Shown one piece after another: positions 667 through 39,680 of a stretch of DNA of 64,000 nt. This DNA is from Guillardia theta CCMP2712 (Eukaryota > Protista > Cryptophyta), in assembly GCF_000315625.1 (NCBI RefSeq), contig NW_005434652.1, positions 634,091-698,090 of the forward strand, given 5' to 3'. Both the position numbers and the translations under genes were made by a program. The notes under the pieces are model-generated. The model was not told the DNA's origin. It ran no database searches and worked only from the letters and a program-made list of their open reading frames with translations. The stretch's first letter is position 1, and each line of letters starts with the position of its first letter.

Positions 667-2509
667 TCATGTGCGATTTGAAATACAAATGTAACTCTCA
701 ATTCTTGATCGATTTCCCCTTTGTTGTATGTACAAGCAATCCACAATGATCAACTCCGCCTGCTGTCCCTGCACTCTTTTTCCAGGCCTGCGCGCACACA
801 TGAACAAATTGACGTCGGGTGAAAATCCCACCAGATGAATACGGGTCAGAAGACGAAGTCTCTCGAGATTCAAGAAGGTTTTCAACCTGTTCATGTGTCA
901 GGCTGCACGATAGCTAGTGTTGGCAGTCTCAGGACGACGCGAGTGTCTTTGAGCTGAATTGCAGAAATGGAAATGTAAACATTTGAAAACTCACAGAAAT
1001 GCATCGCCTTGAACCATTCTAAACAGTAACTGGCAGCCATATTCCAGGATCTGATGGGAGCAGTCAGAGTAAACGAATCAATATCAATGCACATGAGCTT
1101 CTTTGCCGTGTGCGCATCCTGACTTCTGATCATTGCTTCAATCAATATGTCAACGGAACTACACCATACGTGAATGCCCGAGATGGTAACCAAAACATCA
1201 CGTACTACTTGGTGTATTTTGGTGACCTCTGAGAGTCCTTTAAAGACTGGCATCCCTCAGCAGTGGCGCAAAGATTACAGAGAGCAGCAAGTGAGAACTG
1301 AAACCAGTCAGGATTCTTTCAAGCAAACAATAGCTTGCACCTCCCTGACGGCAGCGCTTTCCATGTGCAAAACGAGGTTGTCGAGCAACAGCCTTCCTGC
1401 ACCAGCCTTGGCACCAGCAATTGTACTGTTGAAAGAATCGAAGAAAAGCGCAGAGAGAGCTTGAGCTCCGGCCACAACTGCAGGTTCCTCCTTGTTGTGC
1501 TCGTGCGAACCCTGAGTGATCATCTCGATGGCTCTCAGATCCAAGAATTCCGATCTACGCTTGTTACTCTCTTCGGCTTCCACGACTCGCACGAGCGAGT
1601 TACAAGCTTCGGTGAACACCTTGCTGCTGTGAAAATGCTGGTGCATAATCTCCATCACGACCAGGGAGTCTCCACTGCGAATAGCAAGTTGCAAGTCCCA
1701 GTCCCAGTCGCTTCGCCCAGGGGCTGCAGGGATCACAACGTTCAGAGTCGAACCCCCCGCCGCTCCCTTAGGCACTTCGACCATGACATCGCCTAAGTTG
1801 AGAATCTTCAACCTGACATGCGAGTTGGTCAGAGTCTTCATGCATCCAAGCGAGAGGACCACCGGAAGCTCTGACCTTCGCTCAGCCCGGCAGGTACCAC
1901 TACTGCATGGTTTCTCTCTACTTGCCCCTGTCGCCCATACTTGAAATCTCCATCAGAAAGCAATACTTTTACCGAACCTGCCTGAGCGGAGATCCGGTTG
2001 ACAGGATACGATACTCGCGCAGCATGGTTCCCTTCATTAAGTTCAGAACGCGGAGAAACTGAAAGCATGCACAGAAACCATTTCCTGCAGAAACCCCGAC
2101 TTGTTACATTGCGGAAATTCTTTGTCCTCCGATCCATGCGAACCATTTGCGTCGTCAGCTGCTAACATCTTAGACCTGTGAATCAATGCTGCTTTTCGCT
2201 TTGTCTGCGATGACCCTTGACTTTATGTAGAGAGGCACAGCAACTAGCTGACCTGTACGCTAACGAGGTGGAATTGATACTCTTCTTGAAATGATCTCTT
2301 GAAATGATATCAGATGGGAGCGATTATCATCTTGAAGCAGATCAACCATCTTTGATTTGCCTTCTACGAGCCCATCACTATCGCGACCGTCTGGGCCAGG
2401 GCACGTGAGCGTCAATGGCTAGGAGAGCGAGTTCTCAGTTGCTAGCACCTTTCTCCGTCAGCGTCTGAGCCATGCAGGACATGGCCAACATCACCAGCAC
2501 CCGCTGCAT
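667..2509 (-). CDS. Multi-exon hypothetical protein with N-terminal signal peptide and ARM/HEAT-like helical region (3' end uncertain)
   Basis: ATG at 2509 gives MQRVLVMLAMSCMAQTLTEK followed by a GT donor. ORF pieces 1838-2146, 1308-1862 (helical; ...ACNSLVRVV...GAQALSALF...) and 891-1253 are separated by short introns. Confidence 0.55.
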
Positions 2510-2692
2510 CGCATATGCGCCTACTGCCACAAGCTCATGCTCTACGATGCTGAGAGCCTGCGGGCTCCCGGTCCTTTACTCAAAGTTAAGTTAAAAATCT
2601 TTACTCTACTACTCCAGGGTGGGTAGTAATTCATGGGGATGATAGGGGTACTAGTCTAGGGTGGGCTTGGAGGCCAAAACCGCACGTGTGCA

Positions 2693-5600
2693 ATGGCAAG
2701 TGGGACGAGGACGGCGACGCTGGTGAGTGAAAGAGAAGAGATGAGCTGCTTGAGCTCCATGTTGTCTCTGTCTTCCTCCTTGCTGCTCCTTTCTTGCAAG
2801 ATGTGGTTCACCGCATCGAACTCCTGCATGTTCTAGGACACAAGCCCCTCATGATGACCTCGTTGACGCTAGGTCGCGGTGCTCCTTTTTTGCCATCTGC
2901 AACCCGCGGGTACGAACGTCTCCATGCCTGCATGAAGTCTTGATATTTTCCTCTTCAGATGCTCACTCTGAATCCGGGGGGCCGAATGTCATGGCAGCGA
3001 GAGGACGAGGAGGAACGCGGGGGGGGCTGCGCGGTTCGGTCCGAGGGATGCGCGGCTTGAGGGGGGGGCCGCCGAAGGGGGAGGTCGGGATGACAAGAGG
3101 ATCTTCATGATTGTAATACTGACATGTGCTTGATAGATCCATGCTCAACCAGCGCCCAAGAAAACCGCCGAGCCAGCAGTCTCACAGAAGGTGGAAGCCT
3201 CGTTGATAGACCAGGTTGCCTCCATTTCACTTCACAAAGAAAAGCCGTCAGGTCTTGGAGCATCTTGTACTTCTTCTCGCCTCACACGCTGCAGACTCCA
3301 AGACTGAGCCTTGTCCTGACCTCGTCGAGAAGATCATCTCATGCACGCGTCCCGAAGAAAAGCAGCCGCTCATCGACGGGTACGTGGAGACGTTGCGACG
3401 TGAGGGGCTCGGAGTCCTATCCAAGGATGGAGCGCTGGACGTCTTGAAGGCTGCTCTTGATGAAGGTGCGAGGAGAGAAAGGCCCCGGTGCTCCCCCTTA
3501 TGAAGTGAAGCAGGAGGGAAGGTAGGAGCTCGCAGGCAGGCTGCCCTTGAGCTCGTCTCAGCCATCGTCAAGGCTTTTGGAGGAGCTGCGAGTGAGTGTC
3601 TCATCAAGTCACAAGAGCCGTCTCCTTCCTCTGACCTTGTTCTAGATGCCTGGATGTTTCCACTCCTTGACCTCGTCATCGACAGCATAGGCCATAAGGT
3701 CTCCGCCGTCAGCAGCCTGGGGCTGGAGGCATCGAAGCTCATTGTGGATGGGACTCATCCAGAGTCCTTCCGCCTCGTCCTGCCCTTCTTGACAAGAGCC
3801 TGCCAGCATGACAAAGCCAAGGTGAAGCTGTTCGGCATGTCGACCATCAGCGAGCTCGCGGAAGGAAGGTGCTCTACTCAAGTCGCAAACGACTTGTACG
3901 AGCTAGTCCCACTCCTCACGGTGAACATGTGGGATTGCAAGGACGAGGTGGTGGAGGCAGCAAGGCGATGCCTCGAAGTCTGCTGCGTTGCGGCCAACAA
4001 TCGTGACCTCAAGCCGTTCATCCCCAAGCTCATCAACTGCGTCCTGCACCCCGAAAACGTTCCTGAGTGCGTTCATCAACTTGCTGCGACCGTCTTTGTG
4101 CAGGAGATCAAGTCCCCGGCTCTCGCCGTCACTGTCCCTCTGCTCGAGCGAGGCCTCAACGAAAGAGACACCGTGATCCGCCGCAAGGCGTGCACCATCG
4201 TCGAGAACATGTGCAAGATGATCGACCATCCCGAGGAGGCGATCGCCTTCATGCCCAAGATCAAGCCCATGGTGAGCAGGGCGGCGGAGGAGATTCCAGA
4301 CCCTGAGGCTCGCGGAGTCGCCGGCAAGACTCTCAAGACGCTCCTTGGCATCGAAGAGGCGGCGATCGAGTCGCGGCAGCTGAACCCGGAGGCTGTCTTG
4401 GAGATCTGGGGGTCTGTGTTCCCAGCTACTGATCCTTCTGAGAAGAAGTTGGGGTACGAGGAGGCAGTCGCGCACGTGTGCAAAGTGTGCTCTAGTCTGA
4501 TCACCGATCGCAACTTCGAACACGCGACGTGGCGGGAGGTGCTCGAGGAGCACATGAAGCCCTTCGCTCCCATAGCCCAGGAGGCGAGCGATCAGCTAAG
4601 AGACCTGTGCTACCGCGAGTCGCGACCCAAGGTGGCGGAGGAAGACTGGGACGAGGAAGGCGAGGATCTCTGTAACATCGAGTTCTCGCTGGGCTATGGC
4701 GCAATGATGCTGCTGACCAACACGCGGCTGCACATGAAGCGTGGGAAAAGGTACGGCTTGTGTGGGCCCAATGGATGCGGCAAGTCGACACTCATGCGGG
4801 CGATTGTGAACGGGCAGGTTGACGGGTTTCCTCCTCCCGATAAGCTGCGGACGGTGTATGTGGAGCATGACATTCAGGGGGCAGACGTGTCGAGCTGTGT
4901 CATCGATTTCGTGCTGTCGGACCCGCGGCTGAAGGAGGAGTCGCGGGATGAAGTGACTCGCGTCCTCAAGAGCGTTGGTTTCACCGACGAGCTCTTAGCC
5001 AAGTCCATCCAGGCGCTCAGCGGAGGATGGAAGATGAAAGTAGCGCTTGCTCGGGCGATGCTGCTCAAGGCGGACATCCTGCTGCTCGACGAGCCCACGA
5101 ACCATCTGGACAAGAACAACGTGCAGTGGTTGGAGGAGTACCTGACGTCGCTGCATAACGTGACGTCGATGGTAGTGAGTCACGACTCGCGATTCCTCGA
5201 TCGTATCTGCACGCACATCACGCACTTTGAGAAGAATCGCAAGCTCAAGACCTACCGGGGGAACCTTGCGGAGTTTGTGCGGCAGAAGCCCGAGGCGAAG
5301 GCGTACTATGAGCTGGCGAGTGAGGAGGTGACATTCACCCTGCCGGAGCCAGGGTTCCTAGAAGGCGTCAAATCCAAGGGCAAGGCCATCCTCAAGATGT
5401 CGGACGTATCGTTCGCCTACCCCGGCAGCTCCAAGCCAACGGTGTCGAAGATCAGCCTACAAGCGTCGTTGCTGTCAAGGGTGGCTGTCGTGGGCCCTAA
5501 CGGGGCAGGCAAGTCGACGATCATCAAGCTGCTGACAGGGGAGCTGAAGCCTGACAGCGGGACCGTGTGGAAGCATCCCAACATGCGCATCGCCTACGTT

Positions 5601-6500
5601 GCACAGCACGCGTTCCACCATCTCGAGAAGCACCTGGACAAGACGCCGAATGAGTACATCCAGTGGCGCTACGCGGGAGGGGAGGACAAGGAGTCGCTGA
5701 CAAAGGAAGGCAAAAAGGTGACGGAAGAGGAGGAGGAGCAGATGAAAAAAGTGCAGATGATCTGGACTGATGATGGAAACGTGGAGAAGCGAGTAGTGGA
5801 AGAGATAATGGGGAGGAGGAAACTCAAAGGAGGCTACGAGTACGAGGTCAAGTGGGTTGGGTTGCAGTCGGACAAGAACTCGTGGCTCGAACGGGAGAAG
5901 CTTGTCGAGATGGGCTTCACCAAGATGCTCAACCGTGTCGACGAGCGCGAGGCCCTGCGACTCGGAACGTCGGGAAAGGCACTGACTGCCAAGAACGTGG
6001 AGGATGTGCTGGGAAAGATGGGGCTGGAAGCTGAATTTGCGACTCACAACAGGATCCGAGGGCTGTCGGGAGGACAGAAGGTCAAGGTGGTGCTGGCAGC
6101 GGCAATGTGGGAGGACCCGCACATCCTGGTGCTAGACGAGCCGACGAACTACCTCGACCGCGACTCGCTCGGGGCCCTGGCGACGGCGATGAAGACGTAC
6201 GGAGGCGGAGTGATAATGATCAGCCACAACCATGAGTTCACGCGGGAGGTGTGCACAGAGACGTGGATATGTGAGGAGGGGCGACTGAAACGCGAAGGGA
6301 AGAGCTTCACTGACGACGTCAAGATAGTCGCGCCCACCAACAGCTTGTTCACGGGAGAGAAGAAAGAGGTGAAGGACTCGTACGGGAACACCATTCAAGT
6401 TGAGAACCAAGTGAAGCTGACGGGGAAGGACCTCAAGAAGTACAAGAAGATGAAGGAAGCGAGGAAGAAGCGAGGAGAGGACGTCAGCGACTCCGAGTGA
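2693..6500 (+). CDS. eEF3: Translation elongation factor 3 (eEF3; HEAT + two ABC-F ATPase domains with chromodomain insert), with spliced N-terminal targeting extension
   Basis: Walker A motifs GPNGCGKST and GPNGAGKST, signatures LSGGWKMK and LSGGQKVK, LLLDEPTNHLD and LVLDEPTNYLD. eEF3-typical FSLGYGAMMLL, IAYVAQHAFHHLEKHL, chromodomain YEYEVKW and basic C-tail KKRGEDVSDSE. 5' exons at 2693-2722, 2873-2909, 2959-3083 and from 3137, then a long terminal exon to the stop at 6500. Confidence 0.95.
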
Positions 6501-6545: not shown

Positions 6546-8694
6546 CTAACCTTGCCGTCTTGTTAAAACGCCACCATGCTGTAGCCCTACCACACCTGCT
6601 CGCTCGTTCCATCCTTCTCCTCTCGTCTCTCCTGCGCATCCCATTCTCTTTCTCATCTTCGCCCTCTCAGGCTCTTCCATCTTTTCCTGCACTGCAGGCG
6701 CAGCAGCAGCAGCAGCAGCAGCAGCCAGAGAAGAAGATGCAATCGCTCCCACAGCGGCCCGTCCTGTCCGGCAAGCTTTGCGATCGCTCCCTCCTCCTCA
6801 CCTGAGCTAGATTGGCCGTGAGCTCTTTCAGCGGTCGGGAGTGACATCAGTTTGGAGAAGACAAGCGAGCAGTCTTCTCGGAAGGCATCGTCCAGGCACA
6901 CGCATCTTCCTTGCAGCAAGCATAAGTTGCTGGGGCTGCAGCCACGTGGACAGGAAGAGAGGGGTTCTAAGCTGCCGCAGCGAAGGCCTAGGAGGGACCC
7001 CGAGCAGGAACATCGTCCTGCCTCAAAAGTTGAGCAGCAGCACACGCAAGCAGCAGATGCACCGCTCGTCCTGTTGCAAATTCCTCTCCATCCGCAGCTG
7101 CCGGGACAATCCCTTGCACTGAGTTGTGGATTGAGCATAGCCAGGTTTCCTATCACCACTTCCCCACCTGGTGCAAGAGCCGTTGCAAGCTGCCGGCATG
7201 AGCTCGCAAGCGATTCCCGAGAAGTTTCCATAGCATGCGCATCGCCCTGTCTGCGGGTTGCAGTCTCCTACTCATACAGTCAATGTCTTCCTCCTTGCTG
7301 TTCTCGTACCATGTCCACTGCACGGGCTGACGTGTCCTCCGGGGCACACACGGCTGCAGGTCCTGCCCTTCCTCCTGCCTGTCAGTCTCCGCAACTCAAG
7401 TTCTCGACGTATCTCACGCACCCAGAAGCCGCTCCTCTCGTTGCAGCGGCAGCGTCCCCGCTCGCACTTGCCACGAGCACAAGGAGGTTCACAACGATGA
7501 AGCCACGGCCTGTCAGACAATGAGAAGCAGGCGAGGAGAGAGCAGAGTTCGCACTCCCAAGTTGAGCCCGTGCACTGATGGTCCCAAAAAAACTCGAAAG
7601 TTGTGCCGTTTGCTTCTGCACTTGGCTGCAGCACTTTGATCTGAGCCTAGGAATCAGCTGGAAGAGAGAGAGGAGCACGAGACCTCCCATCGCACCCTCG
7701 CCATTCCCTCCTCCTTGCAGTGAGAACGGATGTGAAAGACGTCTACCGCCGGAGTCAGCCACCCTGAAGATGAGGAGGCAATCAACATTGAGCATGTGGG
7801 GATAAGTTTGAACACTCGCCAGAGCTCGGGAGGGTGAGAATGGGGTCGAGAGCCTGGATGAGATGAGAAGAGCAGCTGATCGACATCGAGCATACCGAAG
7901 AACTTGAGGAGATGGTCATGGAATACTCTACATCTTCCAAACGCAATGAAACAAGTGAAGGAACTTTGACCTGAAACTCTCACCTTGAGACTCTGTCCAC
8001 CACATGCACTCCATCTCTTGATGGGCTTGCTTCTTGCGAGGCAGCATGCTTAGATCCTGCGAGTAGGCTCAACCATGGCACTTGCTCGCACAGATGTCAG
8101 ACTTGAAGGGAGGTGACTTTTCCCTGGCGGATCAAACTTTGCTGCTGCAAGCGACCACATCGTAGATTTATGGCGGGAACCAAAGAATTTGACGAGGACC
8201 AGCGGGAGGAGGAGAATTGGAGGAGAGACGACGAGCAGTCATCTCCCGTGTATCCGTCATGGCAGTCGCAAGAGGCAGTGAGAGGGTCACAACGCCCTTG
8301 GAGCAACGTCATCGCGAGGGTGCACAAGGAGGCGGCAGACCATGGCCGCTGCAAGGCTTTCCGTGACCTCCGGGACAATCGCGACTGCAGTCAACGCCTG
8401 GAGACATCTCATCTGCATTCCTCCTCCTCCTCCTCCTCCTCCTCCTCCTCCTCCTCCTCCTCCTCCTCTCGCACCTCCATAGCCAGCCCAGCACGCACAT
8501 CTCCCGTCTGCCGGGTTGCAGCTGCCGCGCAGCGAGCATGGTGCAGCTTGTCCTCCAGGGCAGACGTGCTGACAGTCGGGGCCATAAAAGCCATGCGCAC
8601 ACACGCATACAAGACCGCCGCAGCGACCATGCCCCGAACACCCGCCGCTGCAACCCACCATGACCAAGCGAATTTGACCTTTTTTTAAAACCAT
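6546..8694 (-). CDS. Multi-exon tenascin/laminin-type EGF-repeat protein
   Basis: Repeated CSGHGRC..C.C..G..G.DC motifs in several frames (CPGGQAAPCSLRGSCNPADGRCAC, CDPLTASCDCHDGYTGDDC, CPGSCGWRGIC, CPRGCSPSNLC). Both ends are approximate. Confidence 0.75.
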
Positions 8695-37305: not shown

Positions 37306-39680
37306 ATGCTGAGCGTCTTGCTGCTCCTCTCTCTGCTCCCCTTGAGCGACGAGACACGCGGAGCAGAGCCCTCCCCATGCTCAGCCTTGCTGCGCCTCCG
37401 AGGAGGAGGGAGCGATGCGTTGAAGGAGGTGAAGTCCGCCATGCAGTCTGGTTACGTGAGCTCGATGGTGTTCTCGGACGAGGATGAGGTGGTGTCAGAG
37501 GACATGTGAGGCCTCCTCTCTCTCAACTCTCACTCACTCGCCATCAGAGTGCCAGTGCAGGTGCTGCCTGTGGGGTACGAGAACAGCTCGAGCCTAGAGA
37601 GGGATCTAAGGTGTGCGAGGGGAGTAGGACAGTTTGGCAGACTGAAGCGCAGCCAGGGAGATGAAGGAGAACTTTCCTGATCTGACCGTGAGCAGAGGGC
37701 ATCCAAGAACAGGCACGAAGAAGTTCGAAGCTCTCTGCCTTCAGTATCTCAAAGTGTCTTGCCAGGAAGAGAGTACTTGGCAGCGATTCGAAGGGAGTAT
37801 GAGGAGTCCGACGCTGTGGAGGCGCAAGCCATCAGATCGCTCATTCTCGACAAAGGTAGTACATGCTTGTTGGTCGTGCATTGCGATCGCTCAGTTGACC
37901 ATGCGCTCTAGATGGATACATCCCCAAGGCGTTGTACGGGCAAGAGAGCGGAGCAGCGTCCAAGGAGGAAAACGAGTTGAGGTAGAGAGGGTTGTCGCCT
38001 GTAAAGCACCTTATGCGTCTTATGCAGCAATGGTGACTTCCCGAGTGTGAGTCAATTCTATCCAGGTGGTCAAGATGCCTCGACACCTCCCTCATGCTGT
38101 TAAATCTCTGCAGAACTCCGCAAACACAACCAAGTACCAAATGCCAAGGGCTCCAACAGCAGCAGCTCAGTTCAAGCCGGAGATGATGGTGATTTCGCCG
38201 TCAGACGTCTGAGAAGCGAAGGACAAGCTGTGAAGTGGGCAGAGGCTGAGGAGTTCCAACGAAGATGGAAGCGATTGGACTACAGGATTCATTTGGCTCG
38301 CACGCGACGAAACCTCGTGCCTGGGAACCTTTCAAGCCAAGTAGCGTGAGATTTGCTTGCTGCTAGCATGCTGATACGTCCAAGGTACTCCCCGTGCTGG
38401 AGGAACTCAACATCCGGCTTAGATGTGTCAGCAAAGAGAAGATAGTGATGATCGCTGGAGAGCTGTTCGAGCAGTTGATTCGAATGAGAGAATCGGTGAT
38501 GGAGTGGGAGATTGATATAAGAAGTGTCTTTCATCGTCTGCTTCATACTTGTTCCTTATGGCGTGTGAAGTTGCTAAAGCAACTGGCAGAAGCTGAAGCA
38601 GACAACTGTCACCCCTTGATCGAACGAGTCGCAGCATTTGACCTGGTCACGATTACTTTGAATTCGATGCTGAGAGGCAACGAGACAAGAACGTCGTTCG
38701 AGTCTCCCTGGATTCTTGACAGCATCGCTAAGACAAAAAGATCGACCAAGCAGCGCAAGTATCGCTCCTCAAGGAAGGAGCATGCGCTTCCGGGCATGAA
38801 GGATCTCTCAGCCTGTTGTTGGGATACTGAAGTGATCTGTCGCAACGCTAGTAAGAGTTGCTACAGCGCTGGCGGTTCTGACGGTTCTGACGGAGCTCCA
38901 GAAATTTCAGAAGGAGGTCGCATTGTGAAGATCGTGGGGGAAGGAACTGTCCTTGTCCAAGGTGGTCTGACTTTCTTCATCTGCCACTTAAATGTCTGCA
39001 GAGCCGCCAGAGCAACTCTCAGCAGAGAGGAGGATGGTTTTCATCTATGCCCAAGACATCCAAAGCAAAGACGCATTTGTCGGGGTCGTGAACCTCAAGG
39101 CTTGCAAGAGTCTTGGCGCCGATCGGTTGACCTTCCTCTCCCTCTCCCTCTCTCTCCCTCCCCCCGTTTGATCAGCTTGTTCAGTTACCTCCCGGAGATC
39201 GGGTACGGCGTGCGCGGCGGCAGCAGCAGGAACGGTCGGTTGAAGAGCACGCCGCAGGTGCGTGGAGGGGAGTGAGGGTGGGGCGAGCTCGCTCATGATG
39301 CCTTGCAGTACCTCAAGGGGTCTCGCACGGTGGAGCGCGACTTCTTCGTCTCAAACTTTCGGACGGGACAAGTGAGTGTCTCAACTTTTCATCTTCTGTA
39401 GTTGAGAAGCTTTCAAGATCATATGCTTGCTCCTTGACAAAAACACCAAAACTCTAGATTATTTCCTCGATGGAAAGTTCCAGGTCGTGGCAAAGTCTCC
39501 GATCTTTGCTCTGACTTCACTTTGCTGACCAGGGCACCGTGTTCAGCGACTTGCAGGTCGAACAGCTCAGGTTCGCAGTCTCAAACGGATGGTATACGAT
39601 GCTTGCCGTTCTCTTATGAATGACAATCGAAATCAGGCAGGGGTCAAGCGAATTTGCTGTAGTCGGCTGTTTCATGTAGA
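37306..39680 (+). CDS. Hypothetical multi-exon protein with signal peptide followed by LRLRGG
   Basis: Starts MLSVLLLLSLLPLSDETRGAEPSPCSALLRLRGG, with many short GT-AG introns and a 293-aa ORF at 38394-39275. End approximate. Confidence 0.6.

Follow-up and report, generated by a model that had tools for sequence, protein, structure and literature searches.

The elongation factor eEF3 is usually regarded as peculiar to fungi, and the reason why certain 80S ribosomes require it is unsettled. The function presumed to be common to Saccharomyces cerevisiae eEF3 (YEF3; PDB 2IX8, 7B7D, 8YLR) and the protein described here is ATP-dependent release of E-site tRNA on 80S ribosomes (PMC7957392). The client of the yeast factor is the host cytosolic ribosome, whereas the presumed client of our protein is a relict endosymbiont ribosome: the periplastidial compartment (PPC) has its own translation, carried out by a second population of 80S ribosomes (PMC6559170, PMC4494062). 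In Guillardia theta, PPC aminoacyl-tRNA synthetases are host-encoded, carry bipartite leaders and have separate cytosolic copies (Gile et al. 2015, PMC4494062). EF3 is not among the proteins named in a re-evaluation of nucleomorph proteomes (PMC6559170), and our literature search for eEF3 in a periplastid, nucleomorph or Guillardia context found nothing relevant.

A non-aromatic residue at position +1, after the signal peptide, marks a PPC protein rather than a stromal one (PMC12136025, PMC4494062). The ASAFind2 reference set (PMC12136025) contains G. theta PPC leaders that end in (LR)LRGG, those of RRM1, Ubc8, EF-1alpha, 14-3-3, CyP and Cdc48, of which RRM1 and Ubc8 are entered as GFP-tested; a literature search for the LRLRGG/LRGG motif in a periplastid or Guillardia context found nothing.

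We describe here a gene that we read, with good confidence on the strength of its sequence, as the nuclear gene for a PPC version of eEF3 in G. theta. It lies in a 64,000-nucleotide stretch of contig NW_005434652.1 (the window). Splicing of seven plus-strand exons (2693-2722, 2873-2909, 2959-3083, 3137-3251, 3295-3465, 3514-3591 and 3646-6500) yields a single open frame of 3411 nt, encoding 1136 residues plus a stop codon, with about 100 extra residues at the N-terminus. Exon 1 (aa 1-10) holds the start codon, the n-region and the beginning of a hydrophobic core; exon 2 (aa 11-22 plus 1 nt), the hydrophobic core and c-region; and exon 3 (aa 23-64), a predicted cleavage site (ADA/HS), an RG-repeat block, an LRGG motif and the start of a linker. 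The linker occupies exon 4, with a conserved SQK(V/L) motif. The EF3 N-terminal HEAT domain begins in exon 5, HEAT sequence makes up exon 6, and exon 7 supplies the remaining HEAT, ABC1, ABC2 with its chromodomain insert, a basic C-terminal tail and the stop codon. Introns 1 (2723-2872, 150 nt) and 2 (2910-2958, 49 nt) are both GT..AG, and intron 3 (3084-3136) has 53 nt; the splice flanks read GTGAGT after exon 1, TAG before and GTACG after exon 2, and CAG before and GTCGG after exon 3.

Transcript evidence comes from assembled contigs of two independent studies, X1 (study P1, organism A) and X2 (study P2, organism B). Spliced contigs of both contain all six GT..AG junctions: 2722/2873 and 2909/2959, on which a sequence-only reading of the window had based its leader, as well as 3083/3137 and three more downstream. 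The three small 5' exons proposed in that reading are therefore confirmed, and the first 64 residues of the spliced product match those it had written out. Transcripts starting only downstream of 2910 had been named as evidence against the leader; the X1 contig reaches upstream to 2679, the most upstream base in any transcript contig, and thus extends 14 nt 5' of the ATG at 2693, giving a minimal 5' UTR at 2679-2692 (plus strand). As assembled, the transcript has ATG 2693 as its first ATG. The X1 contig also carries, ahead of 2679, 13 loose letters that are the reverse complement of 2961-2972, probably an assembly artefact.

A further eEF3 exon upstream of 2693 is not likely. A minus-strand neighbour, arranged head-to-head, lies upstream of the gene and its transcripts end at 2529-2546. 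The 5' part of this neighbour (1926-2546) has five small CT..AC introns, and a Pfam search of its ORFs gave zero matches. Another contig, X4, covers eEF3 only from the last bases of exon 3 onward. We rejected it as evidence of an alternative start: a beginning in the last bases of this G-rich exon fits an assembly break, to which the exon's G-runs probably led at low depth. In the raw RNA run X17, of which about 6% was read, two reads fell on the stretch.

Judged by its sequence, the mRNA is that of a complete eEF3, with HEAT domain, two ABC ATPase domains, chromodomain insert and basic tail. Pfam detects HEAT_EF3_N (E 4e-17), HEAT_EF3_GNC1 (E 7e-33), two ABC_tran stretches and Chromo, the latter inserted in ABC2 (E 4e-9, residues 714-753 of the main exon). 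The ABC motifs are intact in both domains: GPNGCGKST and GPNGAGKST, LSGGWK and LSGGQK, LLLDEPTNHLD and LVLDEPTNYLD. Yeast eEF3A structures match residues 92-1032 (E 1.6e-244), and the yeast protein has the same domain order and aligns end to end. Unlike yeast eEF3, the G. theta protein has the additional N-terminal residues, with a signal peptide-like segment and the RG block, and falls among the protist proteins that Murina et al. 2019 grouped as 'eEF3L'.

The first 24 residues resemble a cleavable ER-type signal peptide. Their coding span (2693-2963, plus strand) is split by introns 1 and 2, and the assignment is based on hydropathy, an A-x-A motif and counterparts in all five relatives described below. 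The 9-mer TLVAVLLFC forms the hydrophobic core, with a Kyte-Doolittle hydropathy averaging 2.9, and A-D-A stands directly ahead of His25. We placed the cleavage site after Ala24 by eye, and the assignment of His25 as the +1 residue rests on that site. The transit-peptide-like part that follows (aa 25-59; 2964-3068, plus strand) begins with this His and has a net charge of about +6. Within it, the RG-repeat block (aa 37-59; 3000-3068, plus strand) comprises 7 RG dipeptides and 3 RGG. All 7 RG dipeptides of the 42 residues between the hydrophobic core and PPKG fall in this block, versus 6 in the 1031-residue mature part. The leader ends with a ubiquitin-tail-like LRGG (aa 56-59; 3057-3068, plus strand), part of a GLRGG at aa 55-59 that precedes a Pro-rich linker. 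The sequence-only reading had described an Arg/Gly-rich, transit-like stretch here: the Arg/Gly richness is present, while in place of a generic transit-peptide composition we find a conserved RG-repeat block ending in LRGG.

The leader can be read in six members of its clade: the G. theta gene itself and five cryptophyte-like genes of environmental origin (L005, L004, L006, L003 and L009). Every one of the six displays the same build: hydrophobic core, small-x-small cleavage site, non-aromatic +1 residue, Arg/Gly-repeat block and GLRG(G/A/P). Such a build, kept in all six, is not due to chance. Hydrophobic cores of the relatives score 2.7-3.3 on the Kyte-Doolittle scale, and their predicted cleavage sites are SDA/H (L005), AEA/Q (L004 and L006), VSA/E (L003) and AGA/E (L009). 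With cleavage at these predicted sites, position +1 is occupied by His in G. theta and L005, by Gln in L004 and L006 and by Glu in L003 and L009, in line with the earlier proposal of a non-aromatic residue at this position, which is hereby extended to the clade. Each relative leader contains 7-10 RG dipeptides, with GLRG(G/A/P) ahead of SQK; RG richness is common to the six members, with 12-18% R and 16-37% G. In L003, leader and eEF3 lie within one unbroken genomic ORF. Among the 223 full-length eEF3-family proteins fetched, a signal-like N-terminal start occurs in a single one, which belongs to the leader clade. Over its C-terminal half, a Teleaulax transcript (P0007) shares 92% identity with P0003, one of the five environmental members, which identifies the clade as cryptophyte.

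The same G. theta assembly (GCA_000315625.1) holds, on another scaffold, the second, leaderless eEF3 that the sequence-only reading had suggested looking for. This protein of the same family, GUITHDRAFT_155320 (P0013), differs from the leader-bearing one in being encoded by a single exon and in having no signal peptide or other hydrophobic N-terminus. It is the nearest sequence to the leader clade in our trees (SH-like 94, SH-aLRT 93); identity between the two G. theta proteins is only 29% over the HEAT domain, compared with 63-66% over the ABC domains. The analysis covered these two; Murina et al. list six eEF3L entries for the species. The leader-bearing copy may have originated by host duplication or by red-algal transfer. 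No red-algal eEF3L was identified among 270 retrieved proteins; cluster look-ups for one named only cryptophytes, greens, fungi, oomycetes, ochrophytes, Mesostigma and Chromera, and a protein atlas search gave giant-virus and fungal clusters only.

The layout of the window eEF3 leader matches that of the G. theta PPC leaders listed in the ASAFind2 set. PPC EF-1alpha (gt_84077), likewise an elongation factor encoded in the nucleus, starts with a signal peptide, has a non-aromatic residue at +1 and carries a leader that ends in LRLRGG immediately before the mature domain. Unlike eEF3, EF-1alpha is a GTPase and its leader is devoid of an RG-repeat block; its placement in the PPC is that of the ASAFind2 listing, while that of eEF3 is predicted. 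RRM1 (gt_85468) shares with eEF3 a signal peptide and an RG-rich block ahead of an RNA-related domain, together with an LRLRGG motif. It is a small RRM protein, however, with LRLRGG before the RG block, whereas the exact LRGG of eEF3 comes after the block. According to the ASAFind2 record, RRM1 was tested as a GFP fusion in Phaeodactylum. The PPC aminoacyl-tRNA synthetases resemble eEF3 in their genetic arrangement and differ in being tRNA-charging enzymes that are not ribosome-bound.

Because the transcript-confirmed N-terminus has the build of a PPC leader, the second 80S ribosome set, in the relict endosymbiont cytoplasm, probably receives eEF3 from the host. The nucleomorph and PPC that this reading presupposes exist in the source organism, since the assembly is that of G. 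theta CCMP2712. On the established import route of cryptophytes, the signal peptide would direct the nascent chain through Sec61 to the lumen of the ER that surrounds the plastid and be cut off after Ala24; the transit-like part would then bring the protein across the periplastid membrane through the ERAD-derived SELMA machinery. As the +1 residue is not Phe, Tyr, Trp or Leu, there should be no onward passage to the stroma and the protein would remain in the PPC, where the leader would probably be trimmed at an LRG(G) site. Mature eEF3 may then serve nucleomorph-type 80S ribosomes by ATP-driven release of E-site tRNA late in translocation, as in yeast, acting beside imported EF-1alpha.

Other destinations and products have to be weighed against this reading. 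Many 80S ribosomes, on which eEF3 acts, are seated at the ER, and the N-terminus is hydrophobic; it could in principle be an uncleaved signal anchor that holds the factor on the cytosolic side of the host ER for membrane-bound host ribosomes. We consider this highly improbable: the core in G. theta is only about 10 residues long and therefore too short to span the membrane, a small-x-small motif stands right behind the core in all six clade members, and the leader matches the PPC leaders of the ASAFind2 set. Stromal proteins, too, have bipartite leaders of this general type, and dual or ambiguous targeting has been described for G. theta aminoacyl-tRNA synthetases (PMC4494062), so that the leader might direct the protein on to the plastid stroma, or to mitochondria by an ambiguous signal. 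Both organelles have bacterial-type ribosomes, however, and eEF3 is not known from ribosomes other than the 80S type; furthermore, all six members have His, Gln or Glu at +1, never Phe, Tyr, Trp or Leu, and an acidic +3 residue is typical of PPC leaders, not of stromal leaders. Such a destination seems extremely unlikely. The sequence-only reading had also suggested a second, cytosolic isoform from the in-frame ATG at 2991, beside the PPC form from ATG 2693. The internal ATG has G at -3 and +4, and G. theta tyrRS is a proposed case of use in both PPC and cytosol. Yet ATG 2693 likewise has G at both positions, a strong context that should leave little room for leaky scanning; the relatives do not retain Met34, zero transcript contigs begin between 2723 and 2990, and the genome has a dedicated leaderless eEF3 gene. 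Two products are thus very unlikely, and the second isoform is both unsupported and unnecessary.

A different question is what becomes of the RG block once the protein has reached the PPC. Instead of being removed with the leader, it may stay on the protein as an RGG/GAR-type RNA-binding module, cleavage taking place upstream of the block, and be adapted to divergent nucleomorph ribosomes or mRNAs. RG richness is found in all six clade members, while the other G. theta PPC leaders of the ASAFind2 set are rich in Ser, Thr, Ala and Pro. Exact LRGG precedes the block in L005 and L006, and the GFP-localised RRM1 also has its LRLRGG before an RG-rich block adjoining an RNA-binding domain. On the other hand, the sole exact LRGG of the G. 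theta eEF3 leader lies at the end of the block, where the five relatives have LRGK, LRGP, LRGA, LRGA and LRGA, and positive charge and an absence of acidic residues would also be expected of a transit-like sequence. We therefore regard retention of the block as possible but doubtful. The same tentative standing applies to the fuller proposal of a dedicated cryptophyte eEF3 for endosymbiont ribosomes whose RG block is kept as an RNA-binding N-terminus on the mature factor. If true, elongation in the PPC would rely on eEF1A plus eEF3, in parallel with the eEF3 of the host itself, and two co-evolving ribosome/eEF3 pairs in one cell would make the determinants of eEF3 dependence mappable.

A PPC-targeted eEF3 would add a ribosome-bound factor to the translation components supplied to this compartment by the host, which already include aminoacyl-tRNA synthetases and EF-1alpha. 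Its leader, unusual for its RG repeats, would be a further example of the LRGG-ending leaders, which may mark a processing step of periplastid import. The cell would also offer a natural pair of eEF3/ribosome systems, with paralogues that have diverged most visibly in the ribosome-binding HEAT domain. That a dedicated, probably imported paralogue is kept in every readable member of the clade suggests that nucleomorph-type ribosomes, too, depend on eEF3.

We aligned the transcript contigs of four public RNA runs to window positions 1900-4300 (2401 nt). The sequence-only reading had placed three small GT-AG exons, encoding a targeting leader, ahead of an eEF3 gene; these plus-strand exons (2693-2722, 2873-2909 and 2959-3083, each bounded by GT..AG, with an ATG at 2693) are present in the sequence, and the two junctions that it had proposed to look for in RNA, 2722/2873 and 2909/2959, are both found in contigs of runs X1 (study P1) and X2 (study P2). 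All six introns of the gene (2723-2872, 2910-2958, 3084-3136, 3252-3294, 3466-3513 and 3592-3645) are skipped exactly in the contigs of both runs, which must come from RNA because the genome retains those introns. The last three junctions also occur in a contig of run X4, from a third study. As this contig starts at the 3' end of exon 3, an exon with long G runs, we take its start as an assembly break and dismiss a second transcript start at that point. Joining the seven exons yields 3411 nt, or 1136 amino acids plus stop, and the 64 N-terminal residues of this reading frame are those predicted beforehand. The X1 contig has its 5' end at 2679, upstream of the ATG, preceded by 13 unaligned letters, 12 of which match the reverse complement of the exon 3 start (2961-2972); these letters probably arose during assembly or by template switching, and a spliced leader is the less likely explanation. 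Roughly 200 nt past the stop, in the 3' UTR or intergenic sequence, CAG is repeated about nine times in a row (6699-6726).

A neighbouring gene on the minus strand (1926-2546; five CT..AC introns of 47-58 nt each) is well expressed in X1, X2 and X4. Its transcript contigs terminate at 2529-2546, and it therefore stands head to head with the eEF3 gene, whose assembled transcript has its first ATG at 2693. The gap of about 130 bp between the neighbour's transcript end and the eEF3 transcript start suggests a bidirectional promoter. A Pfam search with the open reading frames of the neighbour gave no match.

The main exon (3646-6500) carries Pfam matches to HEAT_EF3_N, HEAT_EF3_GNC1, two ABC_tran domains and a Chromo insert, and yeast eEF3A structures match it end to end (E 1.6e-244). 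Walker A, signature and Walker B are intact in both ABC domains. In the alignment, yeast eEF3A residue 92 pairs with residue 5 of the main exon, and the window protein thus has about 100 more N-terminal residues than yeast eEF3. In assembly GCA_000315625.1, that of the model cryptophyte Guillardia theta CCMP2712, the protein predicted from this exon maps to scaffold JH992986.1. A search of the genome for a second, leaderless copy, as had been advised, was successful: GUITHDRAFT_155320 (P0013), on JH993079.1 of the same assembly, is a single-exon eEF3 of 1077 amino acids without a hydrophobic N-terminus. Our paralogue comparison took in these two genes, against six G. theta entries among the cryptophyte eEF3L in Tables S1 and S4 of Murina et al. 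2019 (PMC6723617), where eEF3L, EFL and eEF1A are all recorded as present in G. theta. In the passages of that study searched here, targeting peptides are treated for bacteria-like eukaryotic ABCF groups only, not for eEF3L.

The closest relatives of the window protein are environmental sequences (64-67% identity). Gene calls are truncated in most of them, and the contig DNA shows an in-frame upstream start in every one. We read five relatives from their contigs: L005 (P0002), L004 (P0003), L006 (P0004), L003 (P0005) and L009, the last from a metagenome scan. In L003, leader and eEF3 body form a single uninterrupted genomic ORF, so that their fusion is independent of any splice inference. The signal-like segment and the Arg/Gly-rich, transit-like stretch described in the sequence-only reading both recur across the clade. 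All six leaders share a hydrophobic core (9-mer Kyte-Doolittle mean 2.7-3.3), a small-x-small site, placed by eye (ADA↓H in G. theta; SDA↓H, AEA↓Q, AEA↓Q, VSA↓E and AGA↓E in the relatives), and a block of Arg/Gly repeats that contains 7-10 RG dipeptides (R 12-18%, G 16-37%). After the block, clade members have GLRG with G, A, P or K as the next residue, and a Pro/Ala stretch with a conserved SQK(V/L) motif precedes the HEAT domain. In G. theta, the 42 residues between hydrophobic core and PPKG contain seven RG dipeptides, all within residues 37-59, and the remaining 1031 residues contain six. A signal-like start was seen in one of 223 full-length eEF3-family proteins, itself a clade member, bearing in mind that gene callers may truncate leaders elsewhere. 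The Teleaulax amphioxeia transcript P0007 (EukProt Tamp_02990) is a chimera of two eEF3 paralogues: up to about residue 575 it equals the leaderless Teleaulax eEF3 P0021 (100% identity), and from about residue 580 to 1051 it follows the leader-type P0003 at 92% identity. Because of this match in its C-terminal half, we assign the leader-bearing clade to cryptophytes.

eEF1A normally starts with GKEKHH; in the EF-1alpha of the periplastid compartment (PPC; gt_84077), a signal peptide and leader of a build similar to that of eEF3 ends in LRLRGG directly before this start. Comparable leaders end in (LR)LRGG in G. theta 14-3-3, CyP and Cdc48 and in PLRGG in Ubc8. In RRM1 (gt_85468), a signal peptide is followed by LRLRGG, and an RG-rich block separates this motif from the RNA-binding domain. 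The last five residues of the eEF3 leader, 55-59, are GLRGG (LRGG codons 3057-3068). The motif (LR)LRGG falls exactly at the leader/mature junction in EF-1alpha, 14-3-3, CyP, Cdc48, Ubc8, a starch-synthase-like protein and RRM1 (PMC12136025, supplements 16, 19 and 25). These G. theta proteins come from the ASAFind2 PPC reference set of that study, where RRM1 and Ubc8 are recorded as GFP-fusion tested in Phaeodactylum and a diatom TrxH has SLRGG. A literature search did not find the LRGG motif described in connection with periplastid or Guillardia. Bipartite signals with an aromatic or Leu transit start lead to the stroma and those without to the PPC (PMC4494062; PMC12136025), and acidic residues close to the cleavage site are compatible with a PPC leader (PMC12136025). 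With the site placed by eye, +1 of the eEF3 leader is His, in line with the non-aromatic residue claimed for it, and +3 is Glu. Elsewhere in the window, a short plus-strand ORF (37306-37410) opens with a signal-like, Leu-rich segment and continues with ...ALLRLRGGGSDALKE; it is a further leader of the type signal peptide plus LRLRGG.

The origin of the leader type was approached with two phylogenies, one by FastTree (113 sequences) and one by IQ-TREE (LG+C20, quick search; 49 sequences). The leader clade has a support of 100 in both and stands beside a leaderless cryptophyte clade (Guillardia, Teleaulax, Rhodomonas and Baffinella; SH-like 94, SH-aLRT 93). Since the two clades adjoin, in sequence sets where no red-algal eEF3 was identified, the simplest reading of the trees is a duplication within cryptophytes. 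By domain, the affinity of the two clades resides in ABC2 and the chromodomain, where the leader type is 66% identical to leaderless cryptophyte copies, versus 56-63% to others; over ABC1 its identity to fungal and green algal sequences (65-68%) is on a par with that to the leaderless G. theta paralogue (63%), and HEAT-domain identity between the two G. theta genes is only 29%. Transfer of the leader type from the red-algal endosymbiont is possible; Chondrus has an eEF3L according to Murina et al. (PMC6723617). We also noted an eEF3-like gene (P0128) with an unusual amino-acid make-up in marine metagenome contigs L007/L008 (MDTC01272860.1, Ga0211576_10011394), where it adjoins thioredoxin and an RNA polymerase Rpb10-like gene in a very compact array; these contigs are probably from a giant virus or a picoeukaryote. 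The protein atlas holds many eEF3-like clusters from Nucleocytoviricota.

Beyond the ER membrane, the PPC is the only compartment known to contain 80S ribosomes, which makes other destinations implausible for this protein. An organism with nucleomorph and PPC had been presupposed, and G. theta has both (PMC6559170, PMC4494062), the cryptophyte PPC having its own 80S ribosomes (PMC6559170; PMC4494062). The transcript, domain content, conserved leader, paralogue pair and organism are evidenced here, and the leader-type eEF3 is a sound candidate for a PPC-targeted translation factor. By the established pathway, the nascent chain would enter co-translationally the ER lumen around the plastid, lose its signal peptide at the predicted site after Ala24, cross the periplastid membrane in a SELMA-dependent manner and, for want of an aromatic +1 residue, stay in the PPC. 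There its leader would be trimmed at an LRG(G) site, and the imported factor may release E-site tRNA, the activity known for eEF3 (PMC7957392), on nucleomorph-type 80S ribosomes. The exact LRGG lies after the RG block in G. theta and before it in L005 and L006, as in RRM1. The conserved RG richness of the clade, which is not general in reference PPC leaders, lends some weight to a less likely alternative in which the block is kept as an RGG-type RNA-binding N-terminus of mature eEF3.

Our literature search returned nothing linking eEF3 with PPC, nucleomorph or Guillardia, and EF3 is not among the proteins named in a 2019 re-evaluation of four nucleomorph proteomes (PMC6559170). About 2,400 PPC proteins have been predicted (PMC4494062), and import of host-encoded translation components is itself known, for instance for aminoacyl-tRNA synthetases (PMC4494062) and EF-1alpha (PMC12136025 set); what stands out as most original here is that the leader is a conserved RG-repeat variant. 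That a PPC-type EF-1alpha with a leader figures in the ASAFind2 set raises the question of whether the PPC pairs eEF1A with eEF3.
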